Sequence record: OZ195934.1
DNA length: 64,000 bases
Strand: one strand, 5' to 3'
Shown here piece by piece: positions 10,980 to 54,320 of this stretch. Under the pieces are notes generated by a model, which saw nothing but the letters and a program-made list of their open reading frames with translations, had not been told where the DNA came from and did no database searches. Numbering within the stretch: the stretch's first letter is position 1; each line of letters opens with the position of its first letter. The position numbers were made by a program, and so were the translations under genes.

Positions 10980-11001
10980 ATACATTTCTTTGGGGTATAC
11001 A

Positions 11002-37104: not shown

Positions 37105-37106
37105 TC

Positions 37107-37316: not shown

Positions 37317-38165
37317 ATGTTACATGAAATTCGTGAAGAGACTCAGGGGTTTAATAATGCGTGTCGTATAGGCACGCTTGTTCTCAGTGATCATAAGCCG
37401 TACGATTCGTGCTTCGAAGCACTTGAAATATTACGCTCAAATGGATATCCGTGTAACTTCGATATCAATCATGACAATGGCGGCGGGTTTAGTACGAATG
37501 AATGGGTGTCTCAGTTAAGAGCATTTTCCGTTCGCTATATGAAATCCTCTGTTCATACAAAAGCACTTGTTCAGTCATTCTATGACAATGAGCATGATCA
37601 TGTAATCGAGCTGCCGAAACGCGGGGACAAATACAAGCTAAAATCACTTGCTCCTTGTTTCAAGCAATACAATCGAATCGTGTTCATTGGTGGTACTAAT
37701 CTGATTCATTCACATATGGATTTAGACAAGATTGATGTCATTCTTGACATGGATTCTAGTGTCGTGATAAAGCCACACCCACTTACAAATGTACAAGACA
37801 TGAAAATGTTGACCGAGCGTTATGGTAAAGGTCGCGTTCTGTACAACAAATTGAATGGGATCGAATTGCTGCAACAGTGTGAGCGTGCATGGATCCCCGT
37901 CTCGTCTGAAATGTGGTTCACTTGTGCCTTTTTAGGTATCCCGTACGACACGATCACGAAGTCTGACTACGAGATTGGTGGCACGTACTACGCGATGTTA
38001 GAAGCAATGAAGATCATTCAACGTGACACTAAGTTGCCGATGAACGTCATCGCGTCGCGAATCATCACATCACCAACGTCTGGTATATACACGTCGATGT
38101 ATGCATTCAAACAAAACTATCCCAACTTCATTGCGAATGTTCAATCACATGGTGGGCGCGTATGA
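37317..38165 (+). CDS. GT-B glycosyltransferase-like protein (capsule biosynthesis KpsC/KpsS-like)
   Basis: VVIKPHP motif followed by LLQQCE...SS...FLGIP, typical of the C-terminal Rossmann domain. Confidence 0.55.
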   Translation: MLHEIREETQGFNNACRIGTLVLSDHKPYDSCFEALEILRSNGYPCNFDINHDNGGGFSTNEWVSQLRAFSVRYMKSSVHTKALVQSFYDNEHDHVIELPKRGDKYKLKSLAPCFKQYNRIVFIGGTNLIHSHMDLDKIDVILDMDSSVVIKPHPLTNVQDMKMLTERYGKGRVLYNKLNGIELLQQCERAWIPVSSEMWFTCAFLGIPYDTITKSDYEIGGTYYAMLEAMKIIQRDTKLPMNVIASRIITSPTSGIYTSMYAFKQNYPNFIANVQSHGGRV

Positions 38166-38806
38166 TCAATTTAGACATCCATACTTTAATTTCAAGTGAG
38201 GCGCAAGTCGATTCACTTATAATGTTCAGCACGTCGTTTCGATTGCATCACGCAGATAATGCAGGGGTCATTAAATGCGTCGTTCTCCCGCCAATCGATA
38301 TAGAATCATTACCGTCAATTGATGGCGTGGATTATGTTCGAACATTCACATCCAAATACGTATTCTTGTCAGTCGATAACTTTTTCATCAATAAGATCTA
38401 TGCTGTGTATAGCGCACATCGAGACCGAAACTCAATTCGTAGCTATTTCAATGATGATGAATCGACAGACTTCATGATCGTTAATGATAACGATGGCGAA
38501 GATGTTGAGAATATTCATATGAATATCAATTTCAGTTTTGACAGTCATGGGGATCGAAATGATTACTATAAACGACTGGTTCAAATGAAAGACGTGGTAA
38601 GCATCAACACTAAGAAATTCAAGCTGACCGACCGAACGCAAATAAACAGTTTGTACACTTTACTGTTCCCATGGGAGACTTACTTCGACTCGATGCGACG
38701 AGCAACTGGTCTAAGTGAAGAGTTTATCAGTGATGTGATGTTCAATTGTCAACGATTTTCACATGGCATTGTATATCGCCATAGTGGTTTATTAAATGTG
38801 AGTTAA
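38162..38806 (+). CDS. Hypothetical protein in the modification cluster
   Basis: 214 aa, translationally coupled; no motif recognised. Confidence 0.7.
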   Translation: MINLDIHTLISSEAQVDSLIMFSTSFRLHHADNAGVIKCVVLPPIDIESLPSIDGVDYVRTFTSKYVFLSVDNFFINKIYAVYSAHRDRNSIRSYFNDDESTDFMIVNDNDGEDVENIHMNINFSFDSHGDRNDYYKRLVQMKDVVSINTKKFKLTDRTQINSLYTLLFPWETYFDSMRRATGLSEEFISDVMFNCQRFSHGIVYRHSGLLNVS

Positions 38807-38808
38807 TT

Positions 38809-39495
38809 ATGAAAGAAGTTATATTGATATCAGGTCTAGACAGCATCGTTTTGTATGAAATGCTAAAGTCGGCTAGTCCGAATCTCATTCCAGTTTATTT
38901 CAAATGGGGATTTGACATTGATGACGCGGAAATCAAGATGCTGCCGTCCGGTACTAAAATTCACGAAGTCCCTGAATGGATGCAATTTGACACCGATGGC
39001 AAGCTTGGTGGGGATGAGTGTATCAACTTAGATGGGCGTGATACGATCATGATGAACTTGGTTATGCACATCTACAAGCCGTATGTTATCTACAAAGGCA
39101 CGATTGCAAACGACACGTCATATGTGGAATCTCATGTTGAATTTACTGAGAAAATAAGTAGAACGTGGCGTCTTATCAACAGACACGAGTGTGACATTAA
39201 ACATCCGTTTATAAAGAAGACTAAGCGTGATATTATCGCGTATGCTAACAAGCTCGGAATTGACGCACGTGATTATCAATATTGCTACAATGCTGTGGGT
39301 AATTGTGGCGTATGTAATAAGTGTCGAATGACTCGATTATTGAGTATGTATTCCGACAATCCTGACGTTGAATTTTTACGCAGTTATCTTGGTGAGTGTC
39401 AAAAATCAGCGACGAAGAAAATCGGCGACTACTTGGTGTCGGGTGATGTCGTCGAAGAACTAACAACTTTTTTAAGGAAGTATAATGAAAATTGA
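38809..39495 (+). CDS. QueC-like PP-loop ATP pyrophosphatase
   Basis: N-terminal ILISGLDS (degenerate SGGxDS), PF...TK..I, and C-terminal Zn site YC......CGVCNKC. Confidence 0.75.
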   Translation: MKEVILISGLDSIVLYEMLKSASPNLIPVYFKWGFDIDDAEIKMLPSGTKIHEVPEWMQFDTDGKLGGDECINLDGRDTIMMNLVMHIYKPYVIYKGTIANDTSYVESHVEFTEKISRTWRLINRHECDIKHPFIKKTKRDIIAYANKLGIDARDYQYCYNAVGNCGVCNKCRMTRLLSMYSDNPDVEFLRSYLGECQKSATKKIGDYLVSGDVVEELTTFLRKYNEN

Positions 39496-40156: not shown

Positions 40157-40162
40157 GTTATT

Positions 40163-41056
40163 ATGAGTTCAATCGAAAGAATAGCTGATAAAATGATTCA
40201 CATTTATGATGATGGAATCAAGCGTGCGCAGTGGTACTTTGGTAGTCGAACTCATGACTTTTATCTGTACGGTGTCGGTGAACTACTTGACGTAGTTCGC
40301 CAGTACCCATTCATTGACATGCAGACTAAGCCAGTGGGTACGCTTGTTAAACGTGGCGAGCCTGCGATTGTTGTTACTATCAACTCAAACGAATTGTTGC
40401 AATATGGCAATATGATCGAGACGTTGATTTACAATCGTATTTGGTATGCGTCAACCGTTGGTACAATTCTGCATAACATGCGCGATCATTTGCATTCGAA
40501 TGGATTTGATGTTTATCGTGCATTTCCTCAGATGGGTCGTGCAAGTGTCAATGAACATCAAACGAAAGTTGCTAGTGACATTTTCAGTCGTGTATTTTAC
40601 AAGCTCAATGATTCGCTACGTTCAGTTGCGACTCATAATGAAATACTCATGACTAGTGAGACGTTTTGTATTGAAAACTATCATAGTGTGATGGCTGATA
40701 CGTACGACATACGCGAGTTTTGTAAACTTGCAAACTCACTGAACTATTCAGGTGAGATTATGGTTGATTCTAAGCCAATCATTGATAACATTGAATACGT
40801 GCTATCAGAAACGCCTAATACGGTATGCCAAGTTGAATCAGTGACACGAGAGGAATGGTACGACATTGTTACTCATTTCAGTGGGAATGAACGAGTGCTA
40901 TTCGGAATTGGTAGTTGTTGTTTTACGAATGTGAATAGAGACACGCTTGGGTTCGTGTACAAGACGTGCGCGATACATCGAGGCGACGAGTGGATTGCTG
41001 TTAGTAAGCAGACTAAAAACAAAGAAACATTCAGTGGTTATGTAGAGGAATTGTGA
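40163..41056 (+). CDS. Hypothetical alpha/beta protein in the modification cluster
   Basis: 297 aa, coupled to the radical SAM gene; family not recognised. Confidence 0.7.
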   Translation: MSSIERIADKMIHIYDDGIKRAQWYFGSRTHDFYLYGVGELLDVVRQYPFIDMQTKPVGTLVKRGEPAIVVTINSNELLQYGNMIETLIYNRIWYASTVGTILHNMRDHLHSNGFDVYRAFPQMGRASVNEHQTKVASDIFSRVFYKLNDSLRSVATHNEILMTSETFCIENYHSVMADTYDIREFCKLANSLNYSGEIMVDSKPIIDNIEYVLSETPNTVCQVESVTREEWYDIVTHFSGNERVLFGIGSCCFTNVNRDTLGFVYKTCAIHRGDEWIAVSKQTKNKETFSGYVEEL

Positions 41057-42060
41057 TGAAGAAATACTGCATGGCGCCATTTGCGTCACCTGCAATCACG
41101 CCAGACGGATTTAAGCTGTGCTCATATCCCGGTCAGAAAGTGTACGACGATTTGAGCTTCTGGAATAGTGAAGAGATACAAGAACTGCGCAGGATCATTC
41201 GTGACGGCGGAACGCCCGAGTCGTGTGCTGCGTGTATGGCGTCACGTGATGGGATGTTAATTACGCACAACGTGCATGAATTACGCGATGATTACGTTCC
41301 GATCAATTTTAAGAACTTGTTCATTGCGAGAAGCAATAAGTGTGATTATGCATGTGAAATGTGCTCGTCATCAATATCGCATTCGTACGACAGGATGTTC
41401 AATGACGGTAAGATCGGGATTGTTGAGAACAATTTTGACTTGACTCCGTATCTGCACGAGACTAGACACGCTGCTATTTCGGGTGGAAACCCTGTTTTAG
41501 ATAAAAAACTCATTGAAATAATCGACCAGCTTGATGTTGATCGTCTGGAATCTATGTTCTTCACTAGTAACGGGTCGGTATTCCCAGATGCGTTTTTAGA
41601 TTCAATCAAGCGATTGGAGCGTACTGACATCAGCTTGATATTTTCAATTGACGGCCCACAAGAATACAACGAAAGCGTTCGTATCGGCTGTAAGCAATCT
41701 CGTTTTTATAGCACAGTTAAGAAAGTAATGGAGCGTGTTCGTGACAATTCGAACATTTATACATGCTTCGAATTCACTGCTACTAACACGTCGATTACTA
41801 AAATGGCAGAAATGTATGATGAAATAATCATGACTCTGACTAATGAAGAGCTGTCACGCATCAAATTTGTGTTCAATACATGTTCATTTCCGCATTCGAT
41901 GTCATGTTTCAACTTGAGCAGTGAACAGTATGCTACCATCGAGGTGCAAATTGCATACTTTGAGTCGATTATGCGAACATCGCCACAGCATTTAACTGAA
42001 GCGATTCTGAAGAGACTCCGTGAGTACAAAGAACGCTACGACTCGCAGCGAATTTTATAA
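41053..42060 (+). CDS. Radical SAM enzyme with N-terminal twitch/SPASM-like Fe-S domain
   Basis: CMAPF...LC...CAAC, then SNKCDYACEMC (CxxxCxxC), SGGNP, TSNGS, FSIDG. Confidence 0.9.
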   Translation: MMKKYCMAPFASPAITPDGFKLCSYPGQKVYDDLSFWNSEEIQELRRIIRDGGTPESCAACMASRDGMLITHNVHELRDDYVPINFKNLFIARSNKCDYACEMCSSSISHSYDRMFNDGKIGIVENNFDLTPYLHETRHAAISGGNPVLDKKLIEIIDQLDVDRLESMFFTSNGSVFPDAFLDSIKRLERTDISLIFSIDGPQEYNESVRIGCKQSRFYSTVKKVMERVRDNSNIYTCFEFTATNTSITKMAEMYDEIIMTLTNEELSRIKFVFNTCSFPHSMSCFNLSSEQYATIEVQIAYFESIMRTSPQHLTEAILKRLREYKERYDSQRIL

Positions 42061-43149
42061 TATAATTGACTGATCGATGAAAGACAGTAACACAGGGGAA
42101 GACTTTTCTAAGTCTTCCCTTTTTGCTTTCTGCAACGTCTCTTTACAAAATGCGAGCCAATTCACGTGTGAGTATTTCGAGAATGATTGAACAGACTTCA
42201 ACTCATTCAACACGCGTCTGTTTGCAGTGCAATCGTCTGCGTTTTGCATTACCGAAATTGAGTGTTTCATGAAGTCTGGGTGCGCGTTTGACATAGCCAT
42301 ATTCGTCGGCATTGATATGAACCCAATTCCAATCTCAATGTCAGGGAACGCACTCGTCAGTTCAGGGAATCGCTCGATGTTATACAGTGTAATCGTAGCA
42401 AGAAGAGACACATCGTACATGCTACGATAAGTCTTCGCCTTGCTAATGAACTCACAAAGCCGATTGTAGTTGATGAATCGTCGCTGCACGTTGTTCACAT
42501 CTTCAACACCATCGATTGATATAACCAATCTAACGTGCTTGCCTGACATGTGCAGGTTGAACATATGAGTGAAGAAATCGCTACCATCCCGCATCGTAGA
42601 TGAATTACCATTTGTTACGATGGTCACTTCGTTTACATCGGCATCAATCAGAGATTCTACAAGTTCAGTCCCGCGCTTCATATCCTGCAAATTACCACCA
42701 AGTATTCGTATCGTATCTGCACCAGTCACATCATTGATCGATTGTATACACTCATCGATATTGTCGATGTTTTGAATCTGTTCTGGGTTGTATTGTTTCG
42801 AATACGTTCGAGAAAACTCGTCGCCACACATTATACACGCGCCTGAACACTCATTTGACGGGTACAATATCAAATTGCGCACATCGCTGACTGATACATT
42901 GGTTGAAATTACCGCGTTGTCTTGTTGGAATCGATGTTGTAGATCAGATGAAATACAATACTTGCACGAATCGGGTAGGTCATCGAATCGATGTTCGATC
43001 ATTGCTTCACGCACGTCAGTGATTGTTTTGTTGTTTAATGCGCTTGATGCGTCAGTGTCATTGTAGCGTATGTATGACATACAGCATGAGCTATATGATT
43101 CAGCGGCAATCCCGAAGTCAGTGAATGGGGCAGTGCAAAGAGGTTTCAT
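42055..43149 (-). CDS. Radical SAM enzyme with N-terminal twitch/SPASM-like Fe-S domain
   Basis: CTAPF...SCC...CKYC, SNECSGACIMC, LGGN, VTNG, ISIDG. Confidence 0.9.
   Translation of the reverse strand: MKPLCTAPFTDFGIAAESYSSCCMSYIRYNDTDASSALNNKTITDVREAMIEHRFDDLPDSCKYCISSDLQHRFQQDNAVISTNVSVSDVRNLILYPSNECSGACIMCGDEFSRTYSKQYNPEQIQNIDNIDECIQSINDVTGADTIRILGGNLQDMKRGTELVESLIDADVNEVTIVTNGNSSTMRDGSDFFTHMFNLHMSGKHVRLVISIDGVEDVNNVQRRFINYNRLCEFISKAKTYRSMYDVSLLATITLYNIERFPELTSAFPDIEIGIGFISMPTNMAMSNAHPDFMKHSISVMQNADDCTANRRVLNELKSVQSFSKYSHVNWLAFCKETLQKAKREDLEKSSPVLLSFIDQSIIL
42096..42124 (+). terminator. Rho-independent terminator for the + strand operon, lying within the convergent radical SAM gene
   Basis: GGGAAGACTT-TTCT-AAGTCTTCCC-TTTTT, perfect 10-bp stem. 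Confidence 0.8.
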
Positions 43150-43185
43150 AGTTTATTCTCATAATATTCGATGTATAATTAATTC

Positions 43186-43192
43186 TATTTAG
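43186..43192 (-). promoter_or_regulatory. Late-promoter candidate CTAAATA
   Basis: Reverse strand reads CTAAATA, 37 nt upstream of the 43149 start codon. Confidence 0.5.
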
Positions 43193-43202
43193 CGGGGTTT
43201 AT

Positions 43203-44126
43203 ATGAACCGAATAGCGTCATTCAATCGAGTCGATTCGTCATACGATTACATAACAGATAACGGGCTTGCCAATGTCCCGACAGTATTACAAGCACTGTA
43301 CAATATGATGATTGCGACTGATCGCGATGTTGAATACGGAGTTTCAACTGACAGAACCGACGTTCTGTATCTCGGTATATGTTTTGTTGAATATTCATAC
43401 AACACAGATCGCGAACATTTTAACGATGTCATACGCATGATTGGATCGTCGAATCGCATTGTGATTGTGTATAACTCATGGCAGGTCAAGGGTGCATTGA
43501 AATGGATTCGCGATAATGTCAATCTGAGTTCTTCGCTTGAGCGTGTACTCTCCGCTGATATTGCACTTGCACCGTTATATGAAAATCACGACGTTGAGTT
43601 GATAGAGCAAACATTCGGTCATCGCGTGTTGACATACAACCCGTCGATGCATATTGATTGCAAAGACTACGGGACATTTACTCGAAACAAAAAACGACAA
43701 GTTGTGTATGGAGAGCTTGATATGAATCTCGCGTCTACGTTTACTCAACGTTTCAATATACCAGAATCAGAATTCTTGATGTTCAATTTCAAAAATGTCA
43801 TACACGAAAAGCTGTTAGTTGAAAAGTATTACAGCGAGTCGTGGTTTGTTTTGATGCCGTCTCACTTGGGTGATACGTGCGGTATGGGTTTCTGGCGTTC
43901 GAAAGTACAACACGCGATTAATGTAGGCTCGATAATCATCACCGATGAGCATGAATATTGCAATCTCGGTGAAGCATTTCGCTATACGTACGACGACGTT
44001 CGCTGTATGAGCGACGACGAGCTTTTAGCGGTAGCACATGAACAATGTATCGCGTTTGAAATGAACCTCTCAGAGACGCGTACGCTTGCGAATTTCGACC
44101 AACAATTGAGGAGTATCAGCTTGTGA
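43203..44126 (+). CDS. GT-B glycosyltransferase-like protein resembling T4 beta-glucosyltransferase
   Basis: KKRQVVYG and FWRSKVQHAINVGSIIITDE recall T4 BGT KKTLDVIYGG and RVWETMASDAVMLIDE (alignment from memory, not computed). Confidence 0.5.
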   Translation: MNRIASFNRVDSSYDYITDNGLANVPTVLQALYNMMIATDRDVEYGVSTDRTDVLYLGICFVEYSYNTDREHFNDVIRMIGSSNRIVIVYNSWQVKGALKWIRDNVNLSSSLERVLSADIALAPLYENHDVELIEQTFGHRVLTYNPSMHIDCKDYGTFTRNKKRQVVYGELDMNLASTFTQRFNIPESEFLMFNFKNVIHEKLLVEKYYSESWFVLMPSHLGDTCGMGFWRSKVQHAINVGSIIITDEHEYCNLGEAFRYTYDDVRCMSDDELLAVAHEQCIAFEMNLSETRTLANFDQQLRSISL

Positions 44127-45457
44127 GTAGAATCACATTAGCAATTCCGATGGCTGGGATGGGTAGTCGAATGGGTGCGATATCAGAAATCGTACCGAAA
44201 GGTTTGATCAACTATCACAATCACACATTCTTGTATCACATTTATCGTTATTATGAAGACGCGTTCGACGAGTGTGTAGTTACCGTGAACTCGAAATTCA
44301 GACCGATGCTTGAGCAGTACGCAGAGAACTTCAATCTGACGCTGACTATAATCAATGATGATACGTATGACGGTAACTCGAACATTCTGCATCACTGTAA
44401 AGGCGATGTGATCTTGAACTGGTGCGATGTTGTCCCGGTTGACGTTGACGTTCGCGACTTGAAATCAGGCGTCACGGTGTTCACTAAAGACGGTACGGGT
44501 CGTTTCGTCTACGATAACGGGGTAACTGAAGTTTCAACTGACTCTGGTGATTTCTGTGGGATATACGCGATACGCGACTGTGAATATGACATCGTTAATG
44601 GTGATTTCGTAGATGTCATGATCGCGAATAACTTTGATGTTGATTTGCGCGAGTGTGATGTCGTTGATCTCGGAAGCTTTGATAAGCTTTCTTTGACGCA
44701 AGACACGCTACCGACTGCGAGATATTTCAATGAAATCACATACCACGACGGGGTGATTCGAAAGCGTGCAGTTGGCGACGAGCTTAGTCGATTCAAAATA
44801 TCTAGAGAGATTGAGGTATTAAAGGAAGGGCGCGTTGGTTACGTTGAATTGATTGATCATGATGATGATTCATATACCATGCCAGTCTTGTACGGAACGA
44901 TGCCGACTCGGCTAACACCGCCTATGATCAACAAGGGTGATGATGTCAGCGAAGATGATATTCGCGTCGAAATATCTGAGCGAGTTCTATCTAGAATCGA
45001 AAGCATCACTGAATATACGCACATTGATATTGATGAGCTGCGCGTTAAGTTGCATGAACTTGAATCGTATGTGATAGAAAATACTCATGCTTTCTATGAC
45101 ATACACGGTGATATGATTTGCGACAACGCGTTCGATACTGACAATGGGGTTGTGTTTATTGACCCGCGTGGTTACTTCGGTAATGGAACACGCGGGCCGA
45201 TTGAATATGACACGAGCAAGTTTCTATACAGTGTTAACGGTTACTTTGATTTCAATTACAACGTCATGTACGACGGTGATTTCGAGAAGTACGACAATCA
45301 CAGTGAAATGTCATTGCTTGAAGAAGCATGGGTCGCGACTCACTGGCTTGCATTGGCAGGATTCTTCAAGAACAACCCATCGAAAGCAATTGGTGCATAT
45401 CACATTGGTATGAACAAGTTGTGTCGTTTCATCGCGACTCTAAGCGCGTCTCGTTGA
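44123..45457 (+). CDS. Nucleotidyltransferase fused to an APH/choline-kinase-like domain
   Basis: IPMAGMGSRM...PKGL N-terminal NTase signature, WCDV, and C-terminal HGD...N...FIDPRGYFG kinase motifs. Confidence 0.85.
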   Translation: MSRITLAIPMAGMGSRMGAISEIVPKGLINYHNHTFLYHIYRYYEDAFDECVVTVNSKFRPMLEQYAENFNLTLTIINDDTYDGNSNILHHCKGDVILNWCDVVPVDVDVRDLKSGVTVFTKDGTGRFVYDNGVTEVSTDSGDFCGIYAIRDCEYDIVNGDFVDVMIANNFDVDLRECDVVDLGSFDKLSLTQDTLPTARYFNEITYHDGVIRKRAVGDELSRFKISREIEVLKEGRVGYVELIDHDDDSYTMPVLYGTMPTRLTPPMINKGDDVSEDDIRVEISERVLSRIESITEYTHIDIDELRVKLHELESYVIENTHAFYDIHGDMICDNAFDTDNGVVFIDPRGYFGNGTRGPIEYDTSKFLYSVNGYFDFNYNVMYDGDFEKYDNHSEMSLLEEAWVATHWLALAGFFKNNPSKAIGAYHIGMNKLCRFIATLSASR

Positions 45458-45972
45458 TTAACGTCGCGCTCAACTAGTATGCACTTCACACCTGCGCAGT
45501 TGTCTTCAACGTCGCGTATATTATCGATACGGTCATCAATGAAGTATTCAACGTTGTCTATTTCATTGATGTACTTTGACTTTGATTCATGAAACTCGAT
45601 GCTGATCAGCTCGTCAATTAGAGTCGGGAACAACGCATTTAAGTTGAATTGTCTATTGCACCATGCAGTGCGACTCCATCCGAACTTGGTAAGCGCGATT
45701 ATCTTGTGCGTCTTTGCTAATTCGGTAAGGCATTCTAAAGCATCTTCATACGCAGGCATGTATCTCGCGCTTGCGTGTTCAGTATAGGCGCCCATCAGCT
45801 TACCAATTTCACTATTCGATGCATTGACGAACATTTCACTTGCTCTAATGTCAGTCGGTATCAGTGACAAGTCGTTGAGCTTGTGTGCCATCCCGATATC
45901 ATTCATGAAAAACGGAAGATTCGATTTCCAATTCAAAAGTACCCCATCTACGTCAATTACTATCGTTTTCAT
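45400..45972 (-). CDS. HAD-superfamily phosphatase / nucleotidase
   Basis: IDVDGVL (DxD), ALT, SK, FIDD motifs I-IV. Confidence 0.9.
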   Translation of the reverse strand: MKTIVIDVDGVLLNWKSNLPFFMNDIGMAHKLNDLSLIPTDIRASEMFVNASNSEIGKLMGAYTEHASARYMPAYEDALECLTELAKTHKIIALTKFGWSRTAWCNRQFNLNALFPTLIDELISIEFHESKSKYINEIDNVEYFIDDRIDNIRDVEDNCAGVKCILVERDVNQRDALRVAMKRHNLFIPM

Positions 45973-45995
45973 TATAAATATCCATGTAAATAAAG

Positions 45996-46002
45996 TATTT
46001 AG
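45996..46002 (-). promoter_or_regulatory. Late-promoter candidate CTAAATA
   Basis: Reverse strand reads CTAAATA, 24 nt upstream of the HAD start codon. Confidence 0.5.
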
Positions 46003-46032
46003 AATTTTTTTTGATTTATTTTCATTTTGTTG

Positions 46033-46128
46033 TTGACAGATGTTGTAGAAAATGTAATTATGTATACATCAGCTCAACACTGAAACAACAAACAAAACAA
46101 ACAAAACAATCTTTAAAAGGAAGATAAC
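46033..46128 (+). promoter_or_regulatory. sigma70-type promoter with A-rich leader
   Basis: TTGACA 46033-46038, TAATTA near 46055, AAAAC repeats, AGGA RBS. Confidence 0.55.
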
Positions 46129-46314
46129 ATGAAAACATTAAAAACAATCTCTCTAGCAGTATTACTTACATTCGCATCAGCTTCAGCATTCGCAGGCGGC
46201 ACTATGGGTGGTAACCCTGGCTTCGAAATGTGTAAGATTGGCGCTATCAAATGTGGTGTACCGCTTAAAACTGAAACCCCGAAAGCTGACACTACTGAAG
46301 TTAAAACTAAGTAG
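46129..46314 (+). CDS. Small secreted peptide with a Cys pair
   Basis: Sec signal peptide ending AFA, mature GGTMGGNPGFEMCKIGAIKCGVP...; strong RBS. Confidence 0.7.
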   Translation: MKTLKTISLAVLLTFASASAFAGGTMGGNPGFEMCKIGAIKCGVPLKTETPKADTTEVKTK

Positions 46315-47420
46315 TGACTAGAATTCTGATAAACATGTCGCTTGCAAACATTGGTGATGCGCTAATATGCGCCAAATCTGCACTGAAGTTTGCAAGCACA
46401 TTACGAGAAAATCAGCAATCATTCAAGGTTGAACTATACTACAATAACTCACTATTTGAAAATCAAATGGTAGATGTGTTGCGCGGTCTAGTTGAACATC
46501 ACCATCTCCATACGTGTGTTGATGTCGTCACTGACTGTCAGCACTCGCCTGATATATACATCAGACCATCATTCGGTCACTGTCACACAGAAGTTGAAAA
46601 CACATTTACACAAGACACACGCACATTTGGCGCACAATTAGACGATTGTGAGCGTGATTATAATGTCGTGTACGACTTACGACTATTCTCCTTAATCCAC
46701 GCACCGCTGTGGGCGGCAGAGAATGAGCTATATCGTCGCGTCATGCGTGATGTGTTTGATATTGATAGTGACAGTCTATACTCGTTTGATACGTTCGGTG
46801 CACGCGTAGATCGTCAGAAGAAACATAATATTCTAGTTCATCTTAGTGAGCGCGGTTCGTCGCTTCGCATGGAGAATTCGAAGTTTGTCGATTTTATACG
46901 AGAGTACAGTAAGGTCGCAGACGAAATGCCACGCGTGACGTTTACGGTTCATAAAAACATTGACAATGTGCGTGCAGTCGCAGCCTCAATTGACAATGAT
47001 GTTGAATTGGTAGAAATGACGCTGTTCGACTTGTCTCGTCACATGCGCGATAATGTCGATCTCGTAATCACGAATTCGTGTGGTGTTCTCCACGTGGCAG
47101 GTGCATTCGGCGTGAAAACAGTCGAATTGTCGAACACGGATGATGTGTGGCACCCTATTCGTTGGCAACCACCATCATGCGCGAATAGCCATTTCTTGGT
47201 ATCCGCATTCCCGGGATGGGAGCGTAACATCAATTTCGAGCGTGCAGCCAATGGCGTAGTTACGTGGATGAGCGACGATTCGTGCTTGATGAGTCACATC
47301 AACAGCGGGATGCGTTTAACTCACGATACAATATGCAAGTCGTTATGTGACGAAGTAACAGTTCATGAGCGATGTGCATATACAATGACAATCGATGCCT
47401 TGTATAAAACGAAATTTTAA
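46314..47420 (+). CDS. GT9-like glycosyltransferase (heptosyltransferase fold)
   Basis: NIGDAL at the N-terminus and DLVITNSCGVLHVAGAFGVKTV...RWQP, matching the GT9 DSG..H.A.A motif. Confidence 0.8.
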   Translation: MTRILINMSLANIGDALICAKSALKFASTLRENQQSFKVELYYNNSLFENQMVDVLRGLVEHHHLHTCVDVVTDCQHSPDIYIRPSFGHCHTEVENTFTQDTRTFGAQLDDCERDYNVVYDLRLFSLIHAPLWAAENELYRRVMRDVFDIDSDSLYSFDTFGARVDRQKKHNILVHLSERGSSLRMENSKFVDFIREYSKVADEMPRVTFTVHKNIDNVRAVAASIDNDVELVEMTLFDLSRHMRDNVDLVITNSCGVLHVAGAFGVKTVELSNTDDVWHPIRWQPPSCANSHFLVSAFPGWERNINFERAANGVVTWMSDDSCLMSHINSGMRLTHDTICKSLCDEVTVHERCAYTMTIDALYKTKF

Positions 47421-47497
47421 GTTTAACATGCGCTCAATTCGTCATACACTGTAAATCTAGCAATACTGCTAACAATCGCATATTTGGGGAGTCCATC

Positions 47498-49057
47498 ATG
47501 CAAAAATTAAATAAAGTAACACAAGCAATCGGTCAAATTCAAAACATCGGAACAGGCACTAACTTCATTGGTGCGTCAACTAACATCGTAACGGCAGTTG
47601 ACAGTTATAAAGTCTCACACTGGTCACAATTCCCACGCGGTCTTGAGATCAGCCAATATTACGTCGAAAGCCGAGGCGGCAAGTTCGACAAGATTATGGT
47701 CGATGGTATTGCACGCATGTGTCGTATTCTCGAAAAGGGTGTTTCGAAAGGTGATGTAGCGTATGCGAAGCGATTGTTCAAGAAGCACTTTGGTTCTGAA
47801 GTGTTCAATGACAAGGGTTTTGATATCATCGTCAACGAACTGAACGGCAAACTGCCAATCAAGATTCGTGCGGTGAAAGAGGGCATCGTCGTGCCGACAA
47901 AACACCCAATCTTGACAGTTGAGAACACGGATTCACGTTTCGGCTGGTTACCCGGTTATCTTGAAACGTTCGTCTTGCGTGCTATCTGGTACCCGACTAC
48001 AGTAGCGACTATTTCGTTTGAAGTTAAGAAAATCATCCGCCAGTACATGAAGAAGACTGTAGATGATGAGCTTATCCCTCAACTCGAACCGTTTAAGCTT
48101 CACGACTTTGGAGCACGTGGTGTCTCTAGTGCAGAATCAGCAGCGATTGGCGGCTCTTCTCACTTGAAAAACTTTTTAGGCACTGACACGGTAGAAGCAC
48201 TGGTTGACGTTGAAGAGCTTTACGGCGATGATTTAGAAGATTTCATCGCGGGATTCTCTATCCCTGCACGTGAGCACTCAACAACAACAATCTACAAGAA
48301 AATGGGCGAAGACCTAGCGTTCTTGAACTCGATTGACCAATGGGGTGGCGGTCTATACGCTTGTGTAATGGATTCATACGATTACGAAGCAGCTATGGAA
48401 CGTGTATCAACTGGTCGATTCAAAGAACTGATCATCAGTAAAGGCGGAACGTTCATCGCTCGTCCTGACTCTGGTGTGCCAGTAGATGTAGTCATGAAAG
48501 GTCTAGAAATTCTCGGTAAGAACGTTGGCTACACAGTCAATAGCAAGGGCTACAAAGTGTTACACCCTAGCTACCGCATCATTCAAGGTGACGGTGTGAA
48601 TATCGAAGAGATTCGCAGAATCTTAGACTTCATGGAAGCTAAGGGCTGGTCTGCGGAAAACATTGCATTCGGCATGGGCGGTGGTTTGCTTCAGCAATCT
48701 GACCGTGATACTCAACGATTCGCAATGAAAATGTCAGCAGCAATCATCAACGGTGAATACGTTTCTGTGTTCAAGATGCCAAAGACTGACCCAAGCAAAG
48801 CTTCTAAAGCGGGATTCTTGGATCTTATCGCGGTAAAACCAGACGAGCCAAACCCAGCCGCACGCGGTTATGTTACTGTCTCGACTGAGAGCTATGAATC
48901 ACGCGTACACCCGAACAGTGTTATGGTGACTGTGTTTGAAGATGGTGAAACAGTTTACGACTTCTCACTTGCAGAAGCGCGCCACTTCTCTGACGAACAA
49001 GCGAACTTTCTTAACGAAGGCGAGTGGAAAATCAATAAAAAGCCATTAACGGCTTAA
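47498..49057 (+). CDS. nadV: Nicotinamide phosphoribosyltransferase
   Basis: DSYKVSH, HDFGARG, GTD, SIPAREHS, DSYD, RPDSG, QGDG, FGMGG.LLQ..RD. Confidence 0.96.
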   Translation: MQKLNKVTQAIGQIQNIGTGTNFIGASTNIVTAVDSYKVSHWSQFPRGLEISQYYVESRGGKFDKIMVDGIARMCRILEKGVSKGDVAYAKRLFKKHFGSEVFNDKGFDIIVNELNGKLPIKIRAVKEGIVVPTKHPILTVENTDSRFGWLPGYLETFVLRAIWYPTTVATISFEVKKIIRQYMKKTVDDELIPQLEPFKLHDFGARGVSSAESAAIGGSSHLKNFLGTDTVEALVDVEELYGDDLEDFIAGFSIPAREHSTTTIYKKMGEDLAFLNSIDQWGGGLYACVMDSYDYEAAMERVSTGRFKELIISKGGTFIARPDSGVPVDVVMKGLEILGKNVGYTVNSKGYKVLHPSYRIIQGDGVNIEEIRRILDFMEAKGWSAENIAFGMGGGLLQQSDRDTQRFAMKMSAAIINGEYVSVFKMPKTDPSKASKAGFLDLIAVKPDEPNPAARGYVTVSTESYESRVHPNSVMVTVFEDGETVYDFSLAEARHFSDEQANFLNEGEWKINKKPLTA

Positions 49058-49165
49058 AATGTGACGTAGATCACACAAAACAATGACAAAAGGGTTGCTT
49101 CGGCAACCCTTTTTGCGTATTATAGCTCTATCGAAACGAAACGACGAAAACAAAGAGAGAACATT
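49057..49165 (+). promoter_or_regulatory. CRP-like box plus fused terminator/promoter cassette
   Basis: AAATGTGACGTAGATCACACAA (TGTGA-N6-TCACA at 49060-49075); GGGTTGC-TTCG-GCAACCC-TTTTT; TTGCTT 49095-49100, 17 bp, TATTAT 49118-49123. Confidence 0.8.
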
Positions 49166-50057
49166 ATGCAACTAACTACTACAATGACTAAAGCGCAAAA
49201 ACTTAAAGTAATCGAAGGTTTCAACTTTGAACGTGCAACTGGTCAAAGTCAGTACAAATACCGCAACGGTACTTACATCATGGAAGGTGGTGATACTGCA
49301 CGTCGTCTTCAACTTGTTTCTACTCTAATCACTGGTAAGCCATGTGAGATTGCAGAAGCATCACTTGAGAACTTCGTAGATGTTGTATACATGCAAGCTA
49401 TGTGTGACACGTTCTTCAGCATGTACAATGATAAGTCTGGTCAAGATGAACTTGGTGCTAAAATTCTTGCGAAATTCGTAAAATAACGCTTGACTCGAAT
49501 CACCAAAAAGCCGATAATACTTGTACTGAAACGAAACACACAAAGAGAGAACATTATGACTAAGCTAACTATCAAGCAACGCACTCACGACTTCGACGGC
49601 GAAAAAGAAACTATCTTCACTGTAAATGGTTGTAACATCATCTATTGTGTGTTCACAAGCGATGGTCGCAATTGGGGTTATCAAGTTCGCTCGTTTGCAG
49701 GTGCTGATAACAACAAAATTGTTGCTACTGGTCGCAACTGGTCAGATGTCCGTTCAAAAGCGCGTAAGCTTGCACCTGAGCTTTACGCACAACACGCTGC
49801 ACATCACGGGTTGTAATATGTACGCAATAAAAGCTGTAAGTCATTACGTTCAATTCGTTCTCAAGACTGTGAGCGTAAGTGGCTTCCCAAAGTATACGCG
49901 AATGTATACGTTCAATTTAGCATTAATCACCACGTTCGCTACGCGTGAAGAGTGTCAGAAAATGATCGACGAGTACGATCCTAAACCTGACGCTTGCCTG
50001 CCGTGGCGAGTATACAAACTAGATGATCACGAAATCAAACAACTGGAGTTACACTAA
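49166..50057 (+). other. Three small hypothetical ORFs (49166-49486, 49556-49816, 49818-50057) with an internal promoter (TTGACT 49490, GATAAT 49513)
   Basis: GAGAACATT-ATG RBS pattern. Confidence 0.7.
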
Positions 50058-51334
50058 TGGGTTCATTCAATACAACATGCGCTATCACTCGTACACCAAT
50101 TCAAGAAGGCGCACTTGCACGTGTATTTTTCTTAGAAATGGACGCATGGGCGCTGAATAACAGCTATCGAAATGGTCTTATCGGCAACATCATGACTGGT
50201 TGTGGCTGTTACCCATGGGATAACTTCAAGATTCTCGGTTTACCTCTTCTCGGTAAGTACGATGACTACAATCGCTACGTATTTCAAGACTCTGCGACTG
50301 AACAACTGACGTTAGACGCGATTCGCGAACGCTACTTGCCGAATAAAATCGCCGAGGGCAAGACGATGGAAGACTACAACAGTTGTCATGATTACATGGA
50401 AATTTCGAACATTTCTGACATGCATGAACTGCAAGACATGGAACATTCAAGTGCATTGCGCATCAAGAGCGTGCATGGTTACCCAACGCACGTCGTTAAA
50501 ATGGCGATTCACGAAGAAGTGTACCAAATGATGCTTGAAGGTACGATGCGTGAGGGTTGGGGCGAAGACGCGAAGACGTACACGTTTGCAGACGAAGTAC
50601 AAGCGTGCCTCAAACAACACACTAACGTTGCGACGGGCTGGGATTCGCTGACAGAAGAGCAGAAAGATTACATCAATGCAGTACGTGACGGTATGTATGC
50701 GAAAGCAGATGCGGGTGAAATCAACGAGCGCACCGAAAAGCCGTATACTCGCGAAGCTACTGACATGCGTGTTGAGCGTCTTATCGAATCATTCGCTGAG
50801 GGACTTGATCTCGGTCTTCGTGAACGCACAGAATGGTTCGCCCGAATCGACTTGCGTCAGATGTTCCGTGATGTCGGTGAAGACGAAGAAGCGACCGATG
50901 CTGAACTTCTAGCACTCGCTGAAGCGTATATCGGTGCTAAGTGGTGCGCTCGTTGGATGCAATGCCACAATTACGAATTCGGTCCCGCGATGACTTGTGG
51001 TCAAGACTACGACACGTCATCACACTCAAGCCGTCTACGTAAGCTTGCAGACATCATTGAGAGCAAGAAAAGCGAATATCACTACGAAGAGGCAGTCGAA
51101 GTTAAAACTATTCGTAGCGTGCGTTCTGAGCTGTCAGTCGCTGAGATTAAACGTCGATTCACTGAATGGTACGATGAGTCTGATACAGAATACAAAGACA
51201 TGATTGCCATCGTTGACAAGTCAGTTGGTTCGCTTTACGTAGTCGGTGATGAAAGTGAATTCGATAAGTTCAACGAAACATATGGTGTTATTCGTGACTT
51301 CGTAAATGGCGACGAAATTTATATCGTCGAATAG
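50057..51334 (+). CDS. Large acidic hypothetical protein (MGSFNTTC N-terminus)
   Basis: 425-aa ORF coupled by TAATG. Confidence 0.8.
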   Translation: MGSFNTTCAITRTPIQEGALARVFFLEMDAWALNNSYRNGLIGNIMTGCGCYPWDNFKILGLPLLGKYDDYNRYVFQDSATEQLTLDAIRERYLPNKIAEGKTMEDYNSCHDYMEISNISDMHELQDMEHSSALRIKSVHGYPTHVVKMAIHEEVYQMMLEGTMREGWGEDAKTYTFADEVQACLKQHTNVATGWDSLTEEQKDYINAVRDGMYAKADAGEINERTEKPYTREATDMRVERLIESFAEGLDLGLRERTEWFARIDLRQMFRDVGEDEEATDAELLALAEAYIGAKWCARWMQCHNYEFGPAMTCGQDYDTSSHSSRLRKLADIIESKKSEYHYEEAVEVKTIRSVRSELSVAEIKRRFTEWYDESDTEYKDMIAIVDKSVGSLYVVGDESEFDKFNETYGVIRDFVNGDEIYIVE

Positions 51335-51345
51335 TAAAAAAGTTG

Positions 51346-51404
51346 TTGACAATGCCAGTGAGAAAGCCGATAATTCTCTCACTGGCTAACACAGAGAGAA
51401 AATT
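51346..51404 (+). promoter_or_regulatory. sigma70 promoter whose -10 box lies in the loop of a 10-bp inverted repeat
   Basis: TTGACA 51346-51351; GCCAGTGAGA (51354-51363) / TCTCACTGGC (51377-51386); GATAAT 51369-51374. Confidence 0.7.
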
Positions 51405-51673
51405 ATGAAAAATCAGATTGTTTTGACGATTCAGAATGCTTGGTGTCGCCGTCGTGCATATCGTGTGCTCTTCGAAAAGCCGACTTTCGGTGAGAAACGC
51501 AAAGCGCGTTGGGAAGAAGAATGCAAAGAATTTTGGTATGTCTTAGGTCGATTGAATGCAGAATTCGTTGACAATTGCCCTGAAGACTGCGAACTTGTTC
51601 TAACATGTGCGCGAGTACCACGCAATGCCACTCAAATGTATTACGTTCAATATCAGAAAAGGACAAGCAAATA

Positions 51674-52393
51674 ATGAAAAAACTACTTACAGCAGCAACA
51701 CTAATCGGTTCACTATTCCTAGTTGGTTGTAACGAAACAACTGACAACACAGACAACGATCTGTTACTGAATGCATTGCCTGCAATGTCGAAAACTGAAA
51801 AAGATATGCTTGATCATTTGACTCAATCAGCATACTTGAGCTATCACAACGATACGTATGCAGAGATTATTCGCACTCGTATCACATTCGGTCGCGACGT
51901 TACAGCACGTCCCGATGAACTTGTACCGTTCTGTGATGTAATTGGTACTGTGAACGCTGACGAGAAATCTCGTGATGTTGTGGGTCGTCACTTTACTCTG
52001 AATTCTCAGTGGTTCGAGAAATACGGTATCACTCTGACTACACAGTGTAATCAAATTCAATACGACAAAGAACAGATTGAACAAGCGCGTCAACGCATGG
52101 TCGAACAAGCAAAAGCTGACGAACTTGAAGTATCAAACTCAGTTGTTTCGAAAGAAGCAGTACGAGTTGAGAAGATTCTAGAAGACACAGTGATCATCAA
52201 AGATGAAGCTGTATTGTCACCTGAATTGGTACGTGAGCTGCGTCAATCAGTTACTGACTGTAATCGCGCTAAAATCAAACTAATCGGCATCGTTGATTCT
52301 GGTGAGACTTTGACAACTACACACTACGATGACGTGCAAAGTCTTGTACTACAGTGTGAAATGCATCAACTTGAAGTTGAATTGAACAAATAA
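51674..52393 (+). CDS. Predicted lipoprotein, paralog of 35051-35740
   Basis: Lipobox LVGC; PFCDVI; ends QCEMHQLEVELNK. Confidence 0.8.
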   Translation: MKKLLTAATLIGSLFLVGCNETTDNTDNDLLLNALPAMSKTEKDMLDHLTQSAYLSYHNDTYAEIIRTRITFGRDVTARPDELVPFCDVIGTVNADEKSRDVVGRHFTLNSQWFEKYGITLTTQCNQIQYDKEQIEQARQRMVEQAKADELEVSNSVVSKEAVRVEKILEDTVIIKDEAVLSPELVRELRQSVTDCNRAKIKLIGIVDSGETLTTTHYDDVQSLVLQCEMHQLEVELNK

Positions 52394-52402
52394 GGGAATA
52401 TC

Positions 52403-52822
52403 ATGAAATACTTAATCGCAATCGTACTGTTAACAATGTCTAGCTTCTCTTTCGCAAGCGATTGGACGGTAACAAATGGCGTTGCTTCTACGAAAGAAAT
52501 TTCATCTTCTGGTATCAATGCCGTAATGGAAGTCAGTAATCAAAATGGGGCGCAGTTGATATTCGATAGCGTGTCATGTACATTCACTAATGAACGTCGC
52601 GAGTTTCTAGACTTCCGCAATCTCAACGTGCAAATGGATGACCTAGAGCCTGTAAAAATCCTCGGTCAGCTTTATTGTAAAGCACCCGGTAAAGCGATGT
52701 ACGAAATTGAGCCTAGTCAATTGACGATGTTTCTCGGGATGTTCAAAGTAGGATCTACTGTCACATTCGGTGATGTTCAGTTCAGCGCAATGGGATTCAC
52801 TAAAGCATTGAATCAACTTTAA
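52403..52822 (+). CDS. Secreted hypothetical protein
   Basis: Sec signal peptide MKYLIAIVLLTMSSFSFA. Confidence 0.75.
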   Translation: MKYLIAIVLLTMSSFSFASDWTVTNGVASTKEISSSGINAVMEVSNQNGAQLIFDSVSCTFTNERREFLDFRNLNVQMDDLEPVKILGQLYCKAPGKAMYEIEPSQLTMFLGMFKVGSTVTFGDVQFSAMGFTKALNQL

Positions 52823-52938
52823 GTGACTTGAGTCACAAAAAAGCCCCTTAATCGGGGCTTTTTTAGGTTTGTGGTTGCACGACACACCAAGAACGCGTAC
52901 TATTACTCCATCGAAACGACGAAGACAAAGAGAACATT
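52820..52938 (+). promoter_or_regulatory. Palindrome/CRP-like box, terminator and promoter (duplicate of the 13141 element)
   Basis: GTGACTTGAGTCAC, AAAGCCCC-TTAATC-GGGGCTTTTTT, TTGCAC 52875-52880, TACTAT 52898-52903. Confidence 0.8.
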
Positions 52939-53229
52939 ATGAACATTGACATTTCAACATTCGCTATCTACACGCCAGACGAAATCATTTTGAACTACCG
53001 TGACAAAGAAGTTCGCAACTTCATGGTAGTCGTTGAATCACCAGAGGGTATGCGCCTGACACTTGACACTGGTTTCGGTGACGACTGCGAAGCTGCCAAT
53101 CGCACTGCTAAGAAGATTCGTGAAAAGAACATCATCAATCTACAACATTGGAGCGGTTGGTTTGCAGTTTACGGTTCAAATGCGTGGCAAGGTATTGGCA
53201 AAAAAGTTGAAGACTACGAAATCAAATAA
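52939..53229 (+). CDS. Hypothetical early protein
   Basis: First ORF after the cassette. Confidence 0.7.
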   Translation: MNIDISTFAIYTPDEIILNYRDKEVRNFMVVVESPEGMRLTLDTGFGDDCEAANRTAKKIREKNIINLQHWSGWFAVYGSNAWQGIGKKVEDYEIK

Positions 53230-53236
53230 CAGACAC

Positions 53237-53263
53237 AAAAAAGGGAGCTATATGCTCCCTTTT
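53237..53263. terminator. Bidirectional terminator between convergent genes
   Basis: AAAAAAGGGAGC-TATAT-GCTCCCTTTT. Confidence 0.85.
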
Positions 53264-53264
53264 G

Positions 53265-54320
53265 TTATTTTACCATTTTGATTTCTATCTTGTTGGTCAT
53301 GTATGCCATTTTCTTTTCGAACTCGACATCATATTCTGGTCGATGTTCATACTCAACTGACAACATTTCTTTCAAGCAGCGATACAGCTCGTTCTTGTAG
53401 TACCCTTCTTTCATGCCTTGCATTTGCTTGTATTGCTTCTGCATAGCTTCTTTGATGATATCGGGGTGCATGAACTTGATTGACATTTCACGCGGTGCTT
53501 TCACAGTACCGAAATCAACGTACACTTGAGCCTTTTCTGCGACTTGAATGAAGTCGTAGATTGTGTCGTAGCTCATGCGCGATAGCGTGTGGTGCATACA
53601 CAAGTGTTTGCTGTGTGCTTTAAGAATCGGCACGTTAGCAAGCATCAAGTCGTGATCGATATTCTGGCGTATATATTCGTTGCGCTCTTTACCACCATCA
53701 CATGAGATTGTGAACACAATTCGTTCGCGGTATTCTTTACACACTGCAAGAATCTTTTTAGCCAAAGGAGTGTGCAGCACAGTTCCGTTTGTTAGAATGA
53801 ACACTTCTGCTTTAGTGTCTTCAAGCACTTCTTTCAGCACTTCAAGAGTACGCTTGTCCATGAACGGTTCACCGCCATACAGAACAACAGTTTCAACGCC
53901 TTTCGGGATGCTGAAGTCAAGCTGCTTGTAGTCGTATTCATCTTCTATGTCGTACAAGTCCATGTACGTCTTGCTGTTCTTGCCGAAACACATACGACAT
54001 GCAAGGTTACATTTGTTTGACATCAAGATTTGAATCGTTCGCGGGTGCTCTTCTAACGCTTCATATTCGAAGTATTTCTGGTCAGAAAGTTCACCGTAGC
54101 TCATACACTCTTTGCAGTATTCTGGTAACGTGTCGTAGTCGAACATGCGTTCGCGCACTTCATTGATGATATCAGAGTGCCACCAGTCTTCAACGTTCTT
54201 GAATGACTCACTTAGCTGAGAACAGCAAATGTGATAACCGTCTGGCTTCGCGTCGCGTGTGTTGAATGGAGAGCCGCACAGCGGCTTTCTCCCGTCTTTG
54301 AATCCGAACTTATCTAACAT
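53265..54320 (-). CDS. Radical SAM enzyme with N-terminal twitch/SPASM-like Fe-S domain (third paralog)
   Basis: CGSPF...ICC...CKEC, SNKCNLACRMC, YGGEPF, LTNGT, ISCDG. Confidence 0.9.
   Translation of the reverse strand: MLDKFGFKDGRKPLCGSPFNTRDAKPDGYHICCSQLSESFKNVEDWWHSDIINEVRERMFDYDTLPEYCKECMSYGELSDQKYFEYEALEEHPRTIQILMSNKCNLACRMCFGKNSKTYMDLYDIEDEYDYKQLDFSIPKGVETVVLYGGEPFMDKRTLEVLKEVLEDTKAEVFILTNGTVLHTPLAKKILAVCKEYRERIVFTISCDGGKERNEYIRQNIDHDLMLANVPILKAHSKHLCMHHTLSRMSYDTIYDFIQVAEKAQVYVDFGTVKAPREMSIKFMHPDIIKEAMQKQYKQMQGMKEGYYKNELYRCLKEMLSVEYEHRPEYDVEFEKKMAYMTNKIEIKMVK

Follow-up and report, generated by a model that had tools for sequence, protein, structure and literature searches.

Phage radical SAM proteins with an N-terminal twitch domain and their link to a glycosyltransferase cassette of tail-fiber modules

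Auxiliary Fe-S domains of the SPASM and twitch types are known as C-terminal extensions of radical S-adenosylmethionine (SAM) enzymes (PMC9012708). Three genes in a 64,000-nucleotide stretch of sequence record OZ195934.1 (the window; position 1 is its first letter) encode radical SAM proteins with a cysteine-rich segment in front of the core, which raises the questions of whether this segment is an auxiliary domain and on what the enzymes might act. We refer to the proteins as rSAM-A, rSAM-C, and rSAM-B (rSAM1, rSAM2, and rSAM3, respectively; positions are given in Table 1). A sequence-only reading had taken them for a permuted family of peptide-modifying enzymes and had pointed to the product of a nearby gene, the zipper protein, in which every fourth residue of a repeat is Arg or aromatic. 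We find that the N-terminal segment is a predicted twitch domain, that the proteins belong to a separate phage branch of a large family, and that this branch is tied to cassettes in which a Thr/Ser-rich repeat protein is accompanied by glycosyltransferases (GTs). A sugar is our favored substrate.

Bases 40000 to 55000 of the window are 100% identical to Vibrio phages D483, K575, 6E35.1a, and others. Phages of this type are KVP40-like T4-type phages of ~253 kb, with Vibrio crassostreae and related species as hosts. A position in the D483 record minus 124000 gives the window position. The KVP40 orthologs of rSAM-A, rSAM-C, and rSAM-B are KVP40.0260, KVP40.0261, and KVP40.0272, respectively.

A permuted twitch domain precedes the radical SAM core

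All three proteins carry C-x2-P-F...C(C/S)...C-x2-C in the first ~75 residues and then S-N-x-C-x3-C-x2-C, as described earlier for the same open reading frames (ORFs). The second-position pair is C-S in rSAM-A and C-C in rSAM-B and rSAM-C. Conservation was examined in 77 distant homologs taken from a full HMMER scan that covered 1.8 billion representative sequences. The radical SAM triad does not vary in this set, and conservation reaches at least 90% at the four N-terminal Cys residues and at the Pro of CxxPF. In a cleaner alignment of 45 sequences, P18, C32, C69, and C72 (rSAM-B numbering) are invariant. Because the N-terminal Cys pattern is conserved across these homolog sets, it is a family signature rather than a chance arrangement.

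The best model for each of the three proteins is NCBIfam NF033640 (N_Twi_rSAM, twitch domain-containing radical SAM protein), which aligns end to end, starting at residue 3 to 13 (E values, 1e-28 to 2e-39). It is also the best match for all 77 homologs (strongest E value, 2.7e-195). The N-terminal-twitch layout is thus already curated, and the architecture is not new. In the window proteins, Pfam recognized the Radical_SAM core alone; SPASM had an E value of 0.27 in rSAM-A and no match in the other two. Against the PF04055 gathering threshold of 29.5 bits, rSAM-A (36 bits) and rSAM-B (50.5 bits) score above and rSAM-C (25.5 bits) just below, with its motif intact. The seven-Cys SPASM motif (PF13186; CxxCx5Cx3C) is absent, there being four or five Cys per protein. 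Pfam SPASM is significant in 41 of the 77 homologs, and in the fused or tandem homologs that were scanned individually it lies directly before the core (in P0021, at 408 to 469, with the core at 504 to 670). Model searches therefore bear out the domain order first read from the letters.

The origin of the N-terminal segment was indicated by a profile made from the first ~90 residues of 18 family members and searched against all PDB sequences. Profile positions 3 to 79 matched residues 165 to 248 of BtrN with an E value of 9.9e-6, the sole significant match, and all four conserved twitch Cys (4/4) fell on the four Cys of this BtrN segment. A full-length profile matched BtrN as two swapped pieces, with the core (86 to 205) on BtrN residues 16 to 126 and the N terminus (5 to 81) on residues 168 to 252. 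This swapped match indicates a circular permutation of a twitch enzyme. We consider it secure, as a prediction from homology, that the N-terminal ~85 residues are a true twitch domain permuted to the front of the core, and the earlier placement of an auxiliary Fe-S domain at the N terminus is upheld Cys for Cys. The segment is accordingly a predicted auxiliary Fe-S cluster domain. In BtrN, the auxiliary cluster has four Cys ligands and has been proposed as the electron acceptor in a two-electron oxidation (PMC9012708).

As modeled by AlphaFold (mean predicted local distance difference test [pLDDT], 92.3; predicted template modeling score, 0.91), rSAM-B begins with a beta-hairpin (strands 21 to 25 and 28 to 30) followed by helices, which is the form expected of a twitch domain. 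Its C-terminal ~60 residues are all helical. A fold search with this model recovered generic cores only (SkfB, Z 13.7; BlsE, 13.0; MoaA and viperin, 12.1; SuiB, CteB, and anSME), and no solved structure with the twitch-before-core order was among the matches. QueE models reach at most 36 bits on the window proteins, compared to cut-offs of 206 to 260, and these matches are generic. In agreement with the sequence-only reading, no PqqD or RRE domain was matched in the three proteins even at an E value of ≤1, and none was found among the neighboring genes. Our literature search returned no paper on the N-terminal twitch family, on NF033640, or on the function of the KVP40 radical SAM proteins.

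The cassette-linked proteins form one phage branch

A FastTree phylogeny of 118 family domains, which has long branches and a sampling guided by our own queries, places the 14 radical SAM proteins of cassette loci (see below) on one side of a single split from the 104 others, with a support of 100. The cassette label changes once on the tree, compared to a mean of 13.5 changes after shuffling. Lineage A contains rSAM-A, KVP40.0260, a QueC fusion protein of locus L007, and the protein of locus L090; lineage B contains rSAM-B and is sister to GT8-linked radical SAM proteins; lineage C contains rSAM-C and KVP40.0261. PHROGs places these phage proteins in phrog_14086. The three window paralogs share 23 to 26% pairwise identity and are old lineages, not recent specializations. 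That they belong to the cassettes is well supported, directly for lineages A and B and through clade membership for lineage C.

The sequence-only reading had suggested one paralog for each Arg-aromatic pair. However, the zipper proteins of L012, L098, and L100 combine Trp, Tyr, Phe, and Arg in cassettes with a single radical SAM gene, and the paralogs are ancient; the one-paralog-per-pair scheme is therefore not supported.

A Thr/Ser repeat protein and a predicted glycosyltransferase form the core of the cassette

The zipper gene of the window is accompanied by a gene for a 282-amino-acid (aa) protein. Local hidden Markov models built from the window proteins detected the 282-aa family in L007, L010, L012/13, and KVP40, that is, in every other phage radical SAM locus that was fetched, and the zipper family in L007, L012 (two copies), and KVP40. 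Homologs of the two families flank radical SAM genes in L007, L010, L012, L090, L098, L099, and L100/101, and the gene immediately preceding the cassette is a zipper homolog in L007, L012, L098, L100, and L090. Loci L098, L099, and L100/101 came from a scan of IMG/VR with the closest relatives of rSAM-B as queries; their order is zipper gene, 282-aa gene, a gene of ~220 aa, one to three GT8 genes, and radical SAM gene. In L090 the order is zipper-like gene, rSAM-A type gene, and 282-aa gene. The ~220-aa gene is GT2-like in L100, L012, and L010. The tie between radical SAM and zipper genes noticed in the window is thus seen as a genetic link in several unrelated phages. Neighbors of the cassettes include an SU10 adaptor, tail-fiber N-terminal and repeat domains, a tail-tip fiber, and Peptidase_S74; the cassettes sit in tail-fiber modules. 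The N-terminal domain of the zipper protein is itself common to proteins of these modules, and this 177-aa repeat protein is unlike a typical leader/core precursor peptide.

The predicted structure of the 282-aa protein (pLDDT, 85) retains the HP motif and matches CMP-ulosonic-acid transferases best: the beta-3-deoxy-D-manno-oct-2-ulosonic acid (Kdo) transferase KpsC (Z 9.8, 215 residues aligned), the Kdo transferase WbbB (Z 9.0), a KpsC 2,7 transferase (Z 8.6), and a polysialyltransferase (Z 8.4). In viral contigs, 109 relatives were found and 80 were kept (loci L017 to L096). At 54 of the 59 loci that could be assessed, the 1.3 kb upstream of the 282-family gene contains the end of a gene whose product has at least 30% Thr+Ser, compared to a background of ~9%. 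These upstream proteins often have 50 to 65% Thr+Ser (up to 65%) and consist of period-4 repeats, with Thr/Ser at alternate positions and aromatic, basic, or Asn residues between them. The zipper protein of the window is a short member of this class, and the 282-aa family is the most constant partner of such repeat proteins. Their position upstream of the GT at 54 of 59 loci argues that the Thr/Ser protein is the acceptor, and the zipper protein is a candidate acceptor or substrate. No description of the two-gene cassette was found in the literature.

Two further features of these loci were observed. A small ORF (~60 to 80 aa; coiled-coil-like in L012) lies between the zipper and 282-aa genes in the window, in L007 (8279 to 8521), and in L012 (7391 to 7579). 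At the end of the Thr/Ser repeat protein of L090 (4351 to 5451) are a Gly-rich linker and a Hint/intein-like domain (weak Hint_2 match; E value, 0.008), a sign that the repeat region may undergo self-cleavage or attachment.

Possible substrates of the radical SAM enzymes

We favor, at about an even chance and with the cassette premise included, a reading in which the radical SAM enzymes mature a glycosylated fiber protein by an oxidative radical step on sugar rather than peptide. The core cluster would cleave SAM, and the 5'-deoxyadenosyl radical would take a hydrogen atom from the substrate. The auxiliary [4Fe-4S] cluster, fully ligated by Cys, would take the second electron, as proposed for BtrN, and the substrate would undergo a two-electron oxidation, or a rearrangement or cross-link would follow. 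The substrate may be a sugar of an O-glycan that the cassette GTs would build on Ser/Thr of the fiber protein, or the nucleotide-sugar precursor of that sugar, and each of the three paralogs may serve a different step. A sugar is favored because the constant and fusion partners are glycosyltransferases and sugar-type enzymes, because the only solved sequence relative of the twitch domain is the carbohydrate dehydrogenase BtrN, and because other members of the family abut nucleotide-sugar enzymes. In addition, GT2-like and GT8 genes lie between the 282-aa gene and the radical SAM gene, rSAM-B is co-oriented with a GT-B-like gene, and sugars or nucleotides are the substrates of most solved twitch enzymes (BtrN, BlsE, and MoaA), which rank among the nearest folds. 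We think it quite unlikely that the modification is of a novel radical type, in which a glycan (or a Kdo/nonulosonic sugar) would be linked through a C-C or C-heteroatom bond to Trp, Tyr, or Arg of the repeat or a protein-bound sugar would be tailored. If so, it would give the N_Twi_rSAM family its first function and define a new class of heavily modified phage fibers.

Several points weigh against a sugar step. Glycosylation of the zipper protein is something that we infer. The fold match of the 282-aa family is moderate (Z about 9 to 10), and its top sequence-profile match, KpsC, has an E value of 1.1, insignificant alone. Equating the 214-aa protein of the window with the GT2-like gene of other cassettes proved unsupported (hhalign probability, 0.3%), and no GT8 gene was found in the OZ195934.1-type phage. 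A radical SAM match occurs within the flank of 8 of the 80 282-family loci, one of them strong; the core unit is therefore the repeat protein plus the GT, with the radical SAM gene optional or accessory. The NF033640 scores in Table 1 (133, 113, and 101 bits for the three proteins in a genome scan) are under the cut-off of 170 bits, and the window proteins are best treated as a divergent sister branch. No biochemical work on any N_Twi_rSAM member was found in the literature. Finally, the nearest full-length sequence and fold matches include the peptide maturases TigE, SkfB, CteB, and SuiB.

This last point also speaks for the alternative that the enzymes act on the zipper polypeptide itself, with Arg-aromatic or Cys/Thr cross-links, epimerization, or oxidation giving a rigid beta-hairpin, and with the GTs serving separately. 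We regard this as a serious rival, though a rather unlikely one. The radical SAM clade is strictly syntenic with zipper homologs, and in L090 the radical SAM gene lies directly between the zipper-like and 282-aa genes, without GT8 or GT2. However, there is no RRE domain, and the fusion partners are GT8, QueC-like, and HAD domains, with no peptide-binding domains. Zipper proteins tend to have 3 to 9% Trp at radical SAM loci, compared to mostly 0 to 2% at loci without one, but the zipper-like protein of L090 has only 1.2% Trp, and L085 encodes a Trp-rich (7.5%) repeat protein with no radical SAM gene in 150 kb of contig. The test of this trend used L085 and four other contigs without a family member, and these contigs are incomplete. 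A Cys at the presumed hairpin turn is present in several zipper proteins but is not universal. The permuted order claimed for the family is borne out by the BtrN match, although NF033640 preceded it, and a role on peptides is one option only. As to composition, the zipper proteins of the window, L007, L012, L098, and L100 are mostly Trp-rich, whereas those of L019 to L086 have mostly Phe/Tyr; L085, L025, L061, L067, and L090 are exceptions.

A small-molecule or nucleotide pathway with no relation to the fiber protein appears very unlikely to us. Here the QueC-like and nicotinate phosphoribosyltransferase (NAPRTase)-like proteins, together with rSAM-A and rSAM-C, would make a modified base or nucleotide, such as a 7-deazapurine-like or nicotinamide-related compound. 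The QueC-like, NAPRTase-like, and radical SAM genes are adjacent, QueC is fused to rSAM-A relatives in L007 to L009, and a QueE-like radical SAM gene past the window, a weak PTPS-like frame, and a nearby NadV gene would fit. However, all three paralogs fall in the cassette-linked clade, their QueE matches are generic, and in L090 the closest relative of rSAM-A is flanked by the zipper-like and 282-aa GT genes and has no QueC-like or NAPRTase-like partner. The phage genome also has no TGT or DpdA, and 7-deazaguanine modification of DNA was for this reason rejected as a main reading. Slighter still is the chance that the cassette remodels a surface glycan of the host (lipopolysaccharide [LPS] or capsule), as it might to block superinfection, with the radical SAM enzymes tailoring sugar and the Thr/Ser protein a mere neighbor. 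Host-glycan remodeling has been the interpretation given to GT8 genes in hypervariable tail-fiber regions of marine myophages, which were noted to have radical SAM gene cassettes as well (PMC7029224), and Kdo-transferase-like and GT8 enzymes are typical of LPS and capsule synthesis. However, the very strong link of the GT to a Thr/Ser protein, at 54 of 59 loci, weakens this reading, and the cassettes showed no genes for a flippase, a polymerase, or a lipid carrier.

Relation to known systems

Members of NF033640 have the same N-terminal four-Cys twitch domain followed by a CxxxCxxC core, and the window proteins differ from them as a fully supported phage branch tied to a fiber/GT cassette. BtrN (2-deoxy-scyllo-inosamine dehydrogenase; PDB 4M7T/4M7S) has a homologous twitch domain with its four Cys aligned, and it oxidizes a carbohydrate-like substrate by two electrons (PMC9012708). 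However, its twitch domain follows the core, whereas that of the window proteins precedes it, and the cores are distantly related. SkfB, TigE, CteB, SuiB, and anSME are the nearest full-length matches (TigE, E value of 1e-22; SkfB, by fold as given above), and a protein with an odd repeat adjoins the window radical SAM genes. In contrast to the peptide maturases with SPASM or twitch domains, which have these domains at the C terminus and, as a rule, an RRE at the N terminus, the window proteins lack an RRE and the seven-Cys motif, and their family has glycosyltransferase fusion partners. BlsE, which acts on a nucleoside sugar, and MoaA and viperin, which act on nucleotides, are top fold matches that have the core alone in common with the window proteins.

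On the side of the glycosyltransferases, KpsC, WbbB, and the polysialyltransferase have the same fold class and HP motif as the 282-aa protein. The proposed phage acceptor is Ser/Thr-rich, as in the O-glycosylation of flagellin Ser/Thr with nonulosonic acids, and the weak FlmC-like and PP-loop neighbors recall flagellin-sugar tailoring. In contrast to Kdo and sialic acid systems, no CMP-sugar synthase was identified in the phage. Mycobacteriophages decorate virion proteins with phage-encoded glycosyltransferases, which resembles the role proposed here for the cassette GTs. To our knowledge, neither a radical SAM enzyme nor a Thr/Ser period-4 repeat protein has been described in the mycobacteriophage system.

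The N-terminal-twitch radical SAM family is large, and we found no function for any member in the literature. The phage branch offers a tractable entry, as KVP40 is a cultured model and the recurring partners are few (the repeat protein and one to three GTs). The cassette of a hyper-Thr/Ser repeat protein and a Kdo/sialyl-transferase-like enzyme is widespread in the tail-fiber modules of marine phages, which suggests that glycosylated fibers are common in these phages and may affect host recognition.

Fusion proteins and the wider family

Among the homologs, there are four GT8-radical SAM fusions, one QueC-like-radical SAM fusion (P0025), one HAD fusion, and several tandem doublets. The QueC-radical SAM fusion occurs in three independent metagenome contigs of related phage, L007 (10001 to 11677), L008, and L009, in which the gene order mirrors that of the window and the radical SAM half has 46% identity to rSAM-A. 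Family matches in the representative library number in the thousands at an E value of ≤0.001, though many of these may share the radical SAM core only.

Recurrent neighbors at viral loci are short-chain dehydrogenase/reductase (SDR) nucleotide-sugar epimerases or dehydratases, a GHMP kinase, methyltransferases, and a Trp-halogenase-like flavoenzyme. In 16 viral loci that form a group with a single radical SAM gene each, this N_Twi_rSAM gene has an SDR epimerase/dehydratase gene abutting it (examples are listed in Table 1), and the halogenase-like gene follows the radical SAM gene at 10 loci of the wider set. Viral arrays of 5 to 11 N_Twi_rSAM paralogs within 20 kb are present in L154, L103, L150, L105, and L011, some with methyltransferases. 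Bacterial contexts were seen in a few metagenome look-ups; one chromosome (L014) has five N_Twi_rSAM genes in a row adjoining an S-adenosylhomocysteine hydrolase gene, and a 281-aa gene of this array gave no match to the 282-aa family. Salmonella phage SPN3US (L176), a representative of a type of jumbo phage, has two adjacent radical SAM genes, gp102 and gp103, whose products are 26 to 30% identical to rSAM-B; in SEGD1-type relatives, the match to rSAM-B also spans the N-terminal region. The SPN3US pair adjoins genes for a virion structural protein, a DUF4376 protein, and a tail assembly chaperone.

Gene neighborhood in the window

The plus-strand order in the window is zipper, small ORF, 282-aa, 214-aa, QueC-like, oxygenase-like, NAPRTase-like, and rSAM-A genes, on which rSAM-C converges with a 6-nucleotide overlap (Table 1). 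On the minus strand, the GT-B-like gene, the 89-aa ORF, and rSAM-B as the last gene form a three-gene unit in which stops and starts overlap or abut.

Table 1. Features of the radical SAM locus (window positions of OZ195934.1, except where another locus is named)
Feature	Positions	Strand	Description
Zipper protein	36571..37104	+	177 aa; 41% Thr+Ser; period-4 repeat
Small ORF	36933-37316	+	Listed form overlaps the end of the zipper gene; later start probable
282-aa protein	37317..38165	+	Predicted Kdo/sialyl-transferase-like GT-B fold; invariant K-P-H-P
214-aa protein	38162..38806	+	Conserved partner; position equals that of GT2-like genes of other cassettes
QueC-like protein	38809..39495	+	PP-loop protein
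Oxygenase-like protein	39485-40156	+	223 aa; weak FlmC-type 2-oxoglutarate-Fe(II) oxygenase match; syntenic in L007
NAPRTase/NAMPT-like protein	40163-41056	+	297 aa; truncated; syntenic in L007
rSAM-A	41053..42060	+	335 aa; NF033640, 100.6 bits; phrog_14086; lineage A
rSAM-A twitch domain (predicted)	41053-41310	+	Residues ~1-86; C6, C23, C58, C61
rSAM-A radical SAM triad	41341-41364	+	C97/C101/C104
rSAM-C	42055..43149	-	364 aa; NF033640, 113.5 bits; lineage C
rSAM-C cysteines		-	Twitch (predicted), C5, C22/23, C62, C65; triad, C101/C105/C108
Accessory sugar-type genes	43203..47420	mixed	307-aa GT-like; 444-aa NTP-transferase + kinase; 190-aa HAD (-); 368-aa GT9/epimerase-like; partly absent from KVP40
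rSAM-B	53265..54320	-	351 aa; NF033640, 135.7 bits; model pLDDT 92; lineage B
rSAM-B cysteines	about 54081-54284 (twitch Cys)	-	Twitch (predicted), C15, C32/33, C69, C72; triad, C104/C108/C111
89-aa protein	54320-54589	-	Between GT-B-like gene and rSAM-B
GT-B/Glycos_transf_1-like protein	54573-55595	-	340 aa; weak match (E value, 0.013); KVP40.0274 matched PF00534
SDR gene, locus L134	9156-9998		Radical SAM gene at 9998-11143
SDR/radical SAM/halogenase-like example, locus L118	4769-6193		

A NadV gene lies near the cluster, and the QueE-like radical SAM gene lies just beyond the end of the window (about 188137 to 188442 of the D483 record). A weak tandem PTPS (QueD-like) frame is at 97736 to 98572 of that record, likewise outside the window. 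With QueC-like, QueE-like, and weak PTPS genes but no TGT or DpdA, the genome could have a deazapurine pathway that is incomplete or departs from the usual form.

In the public annotation of D483, rSAM-C begins 23 codons too late, so that the first twitch Cys is lost; the long start is backed by the alignment. The zipper ORF is uncalled in the same annotation, and KVP40 annotates both the zipper protein and rSAM-C in its long form.

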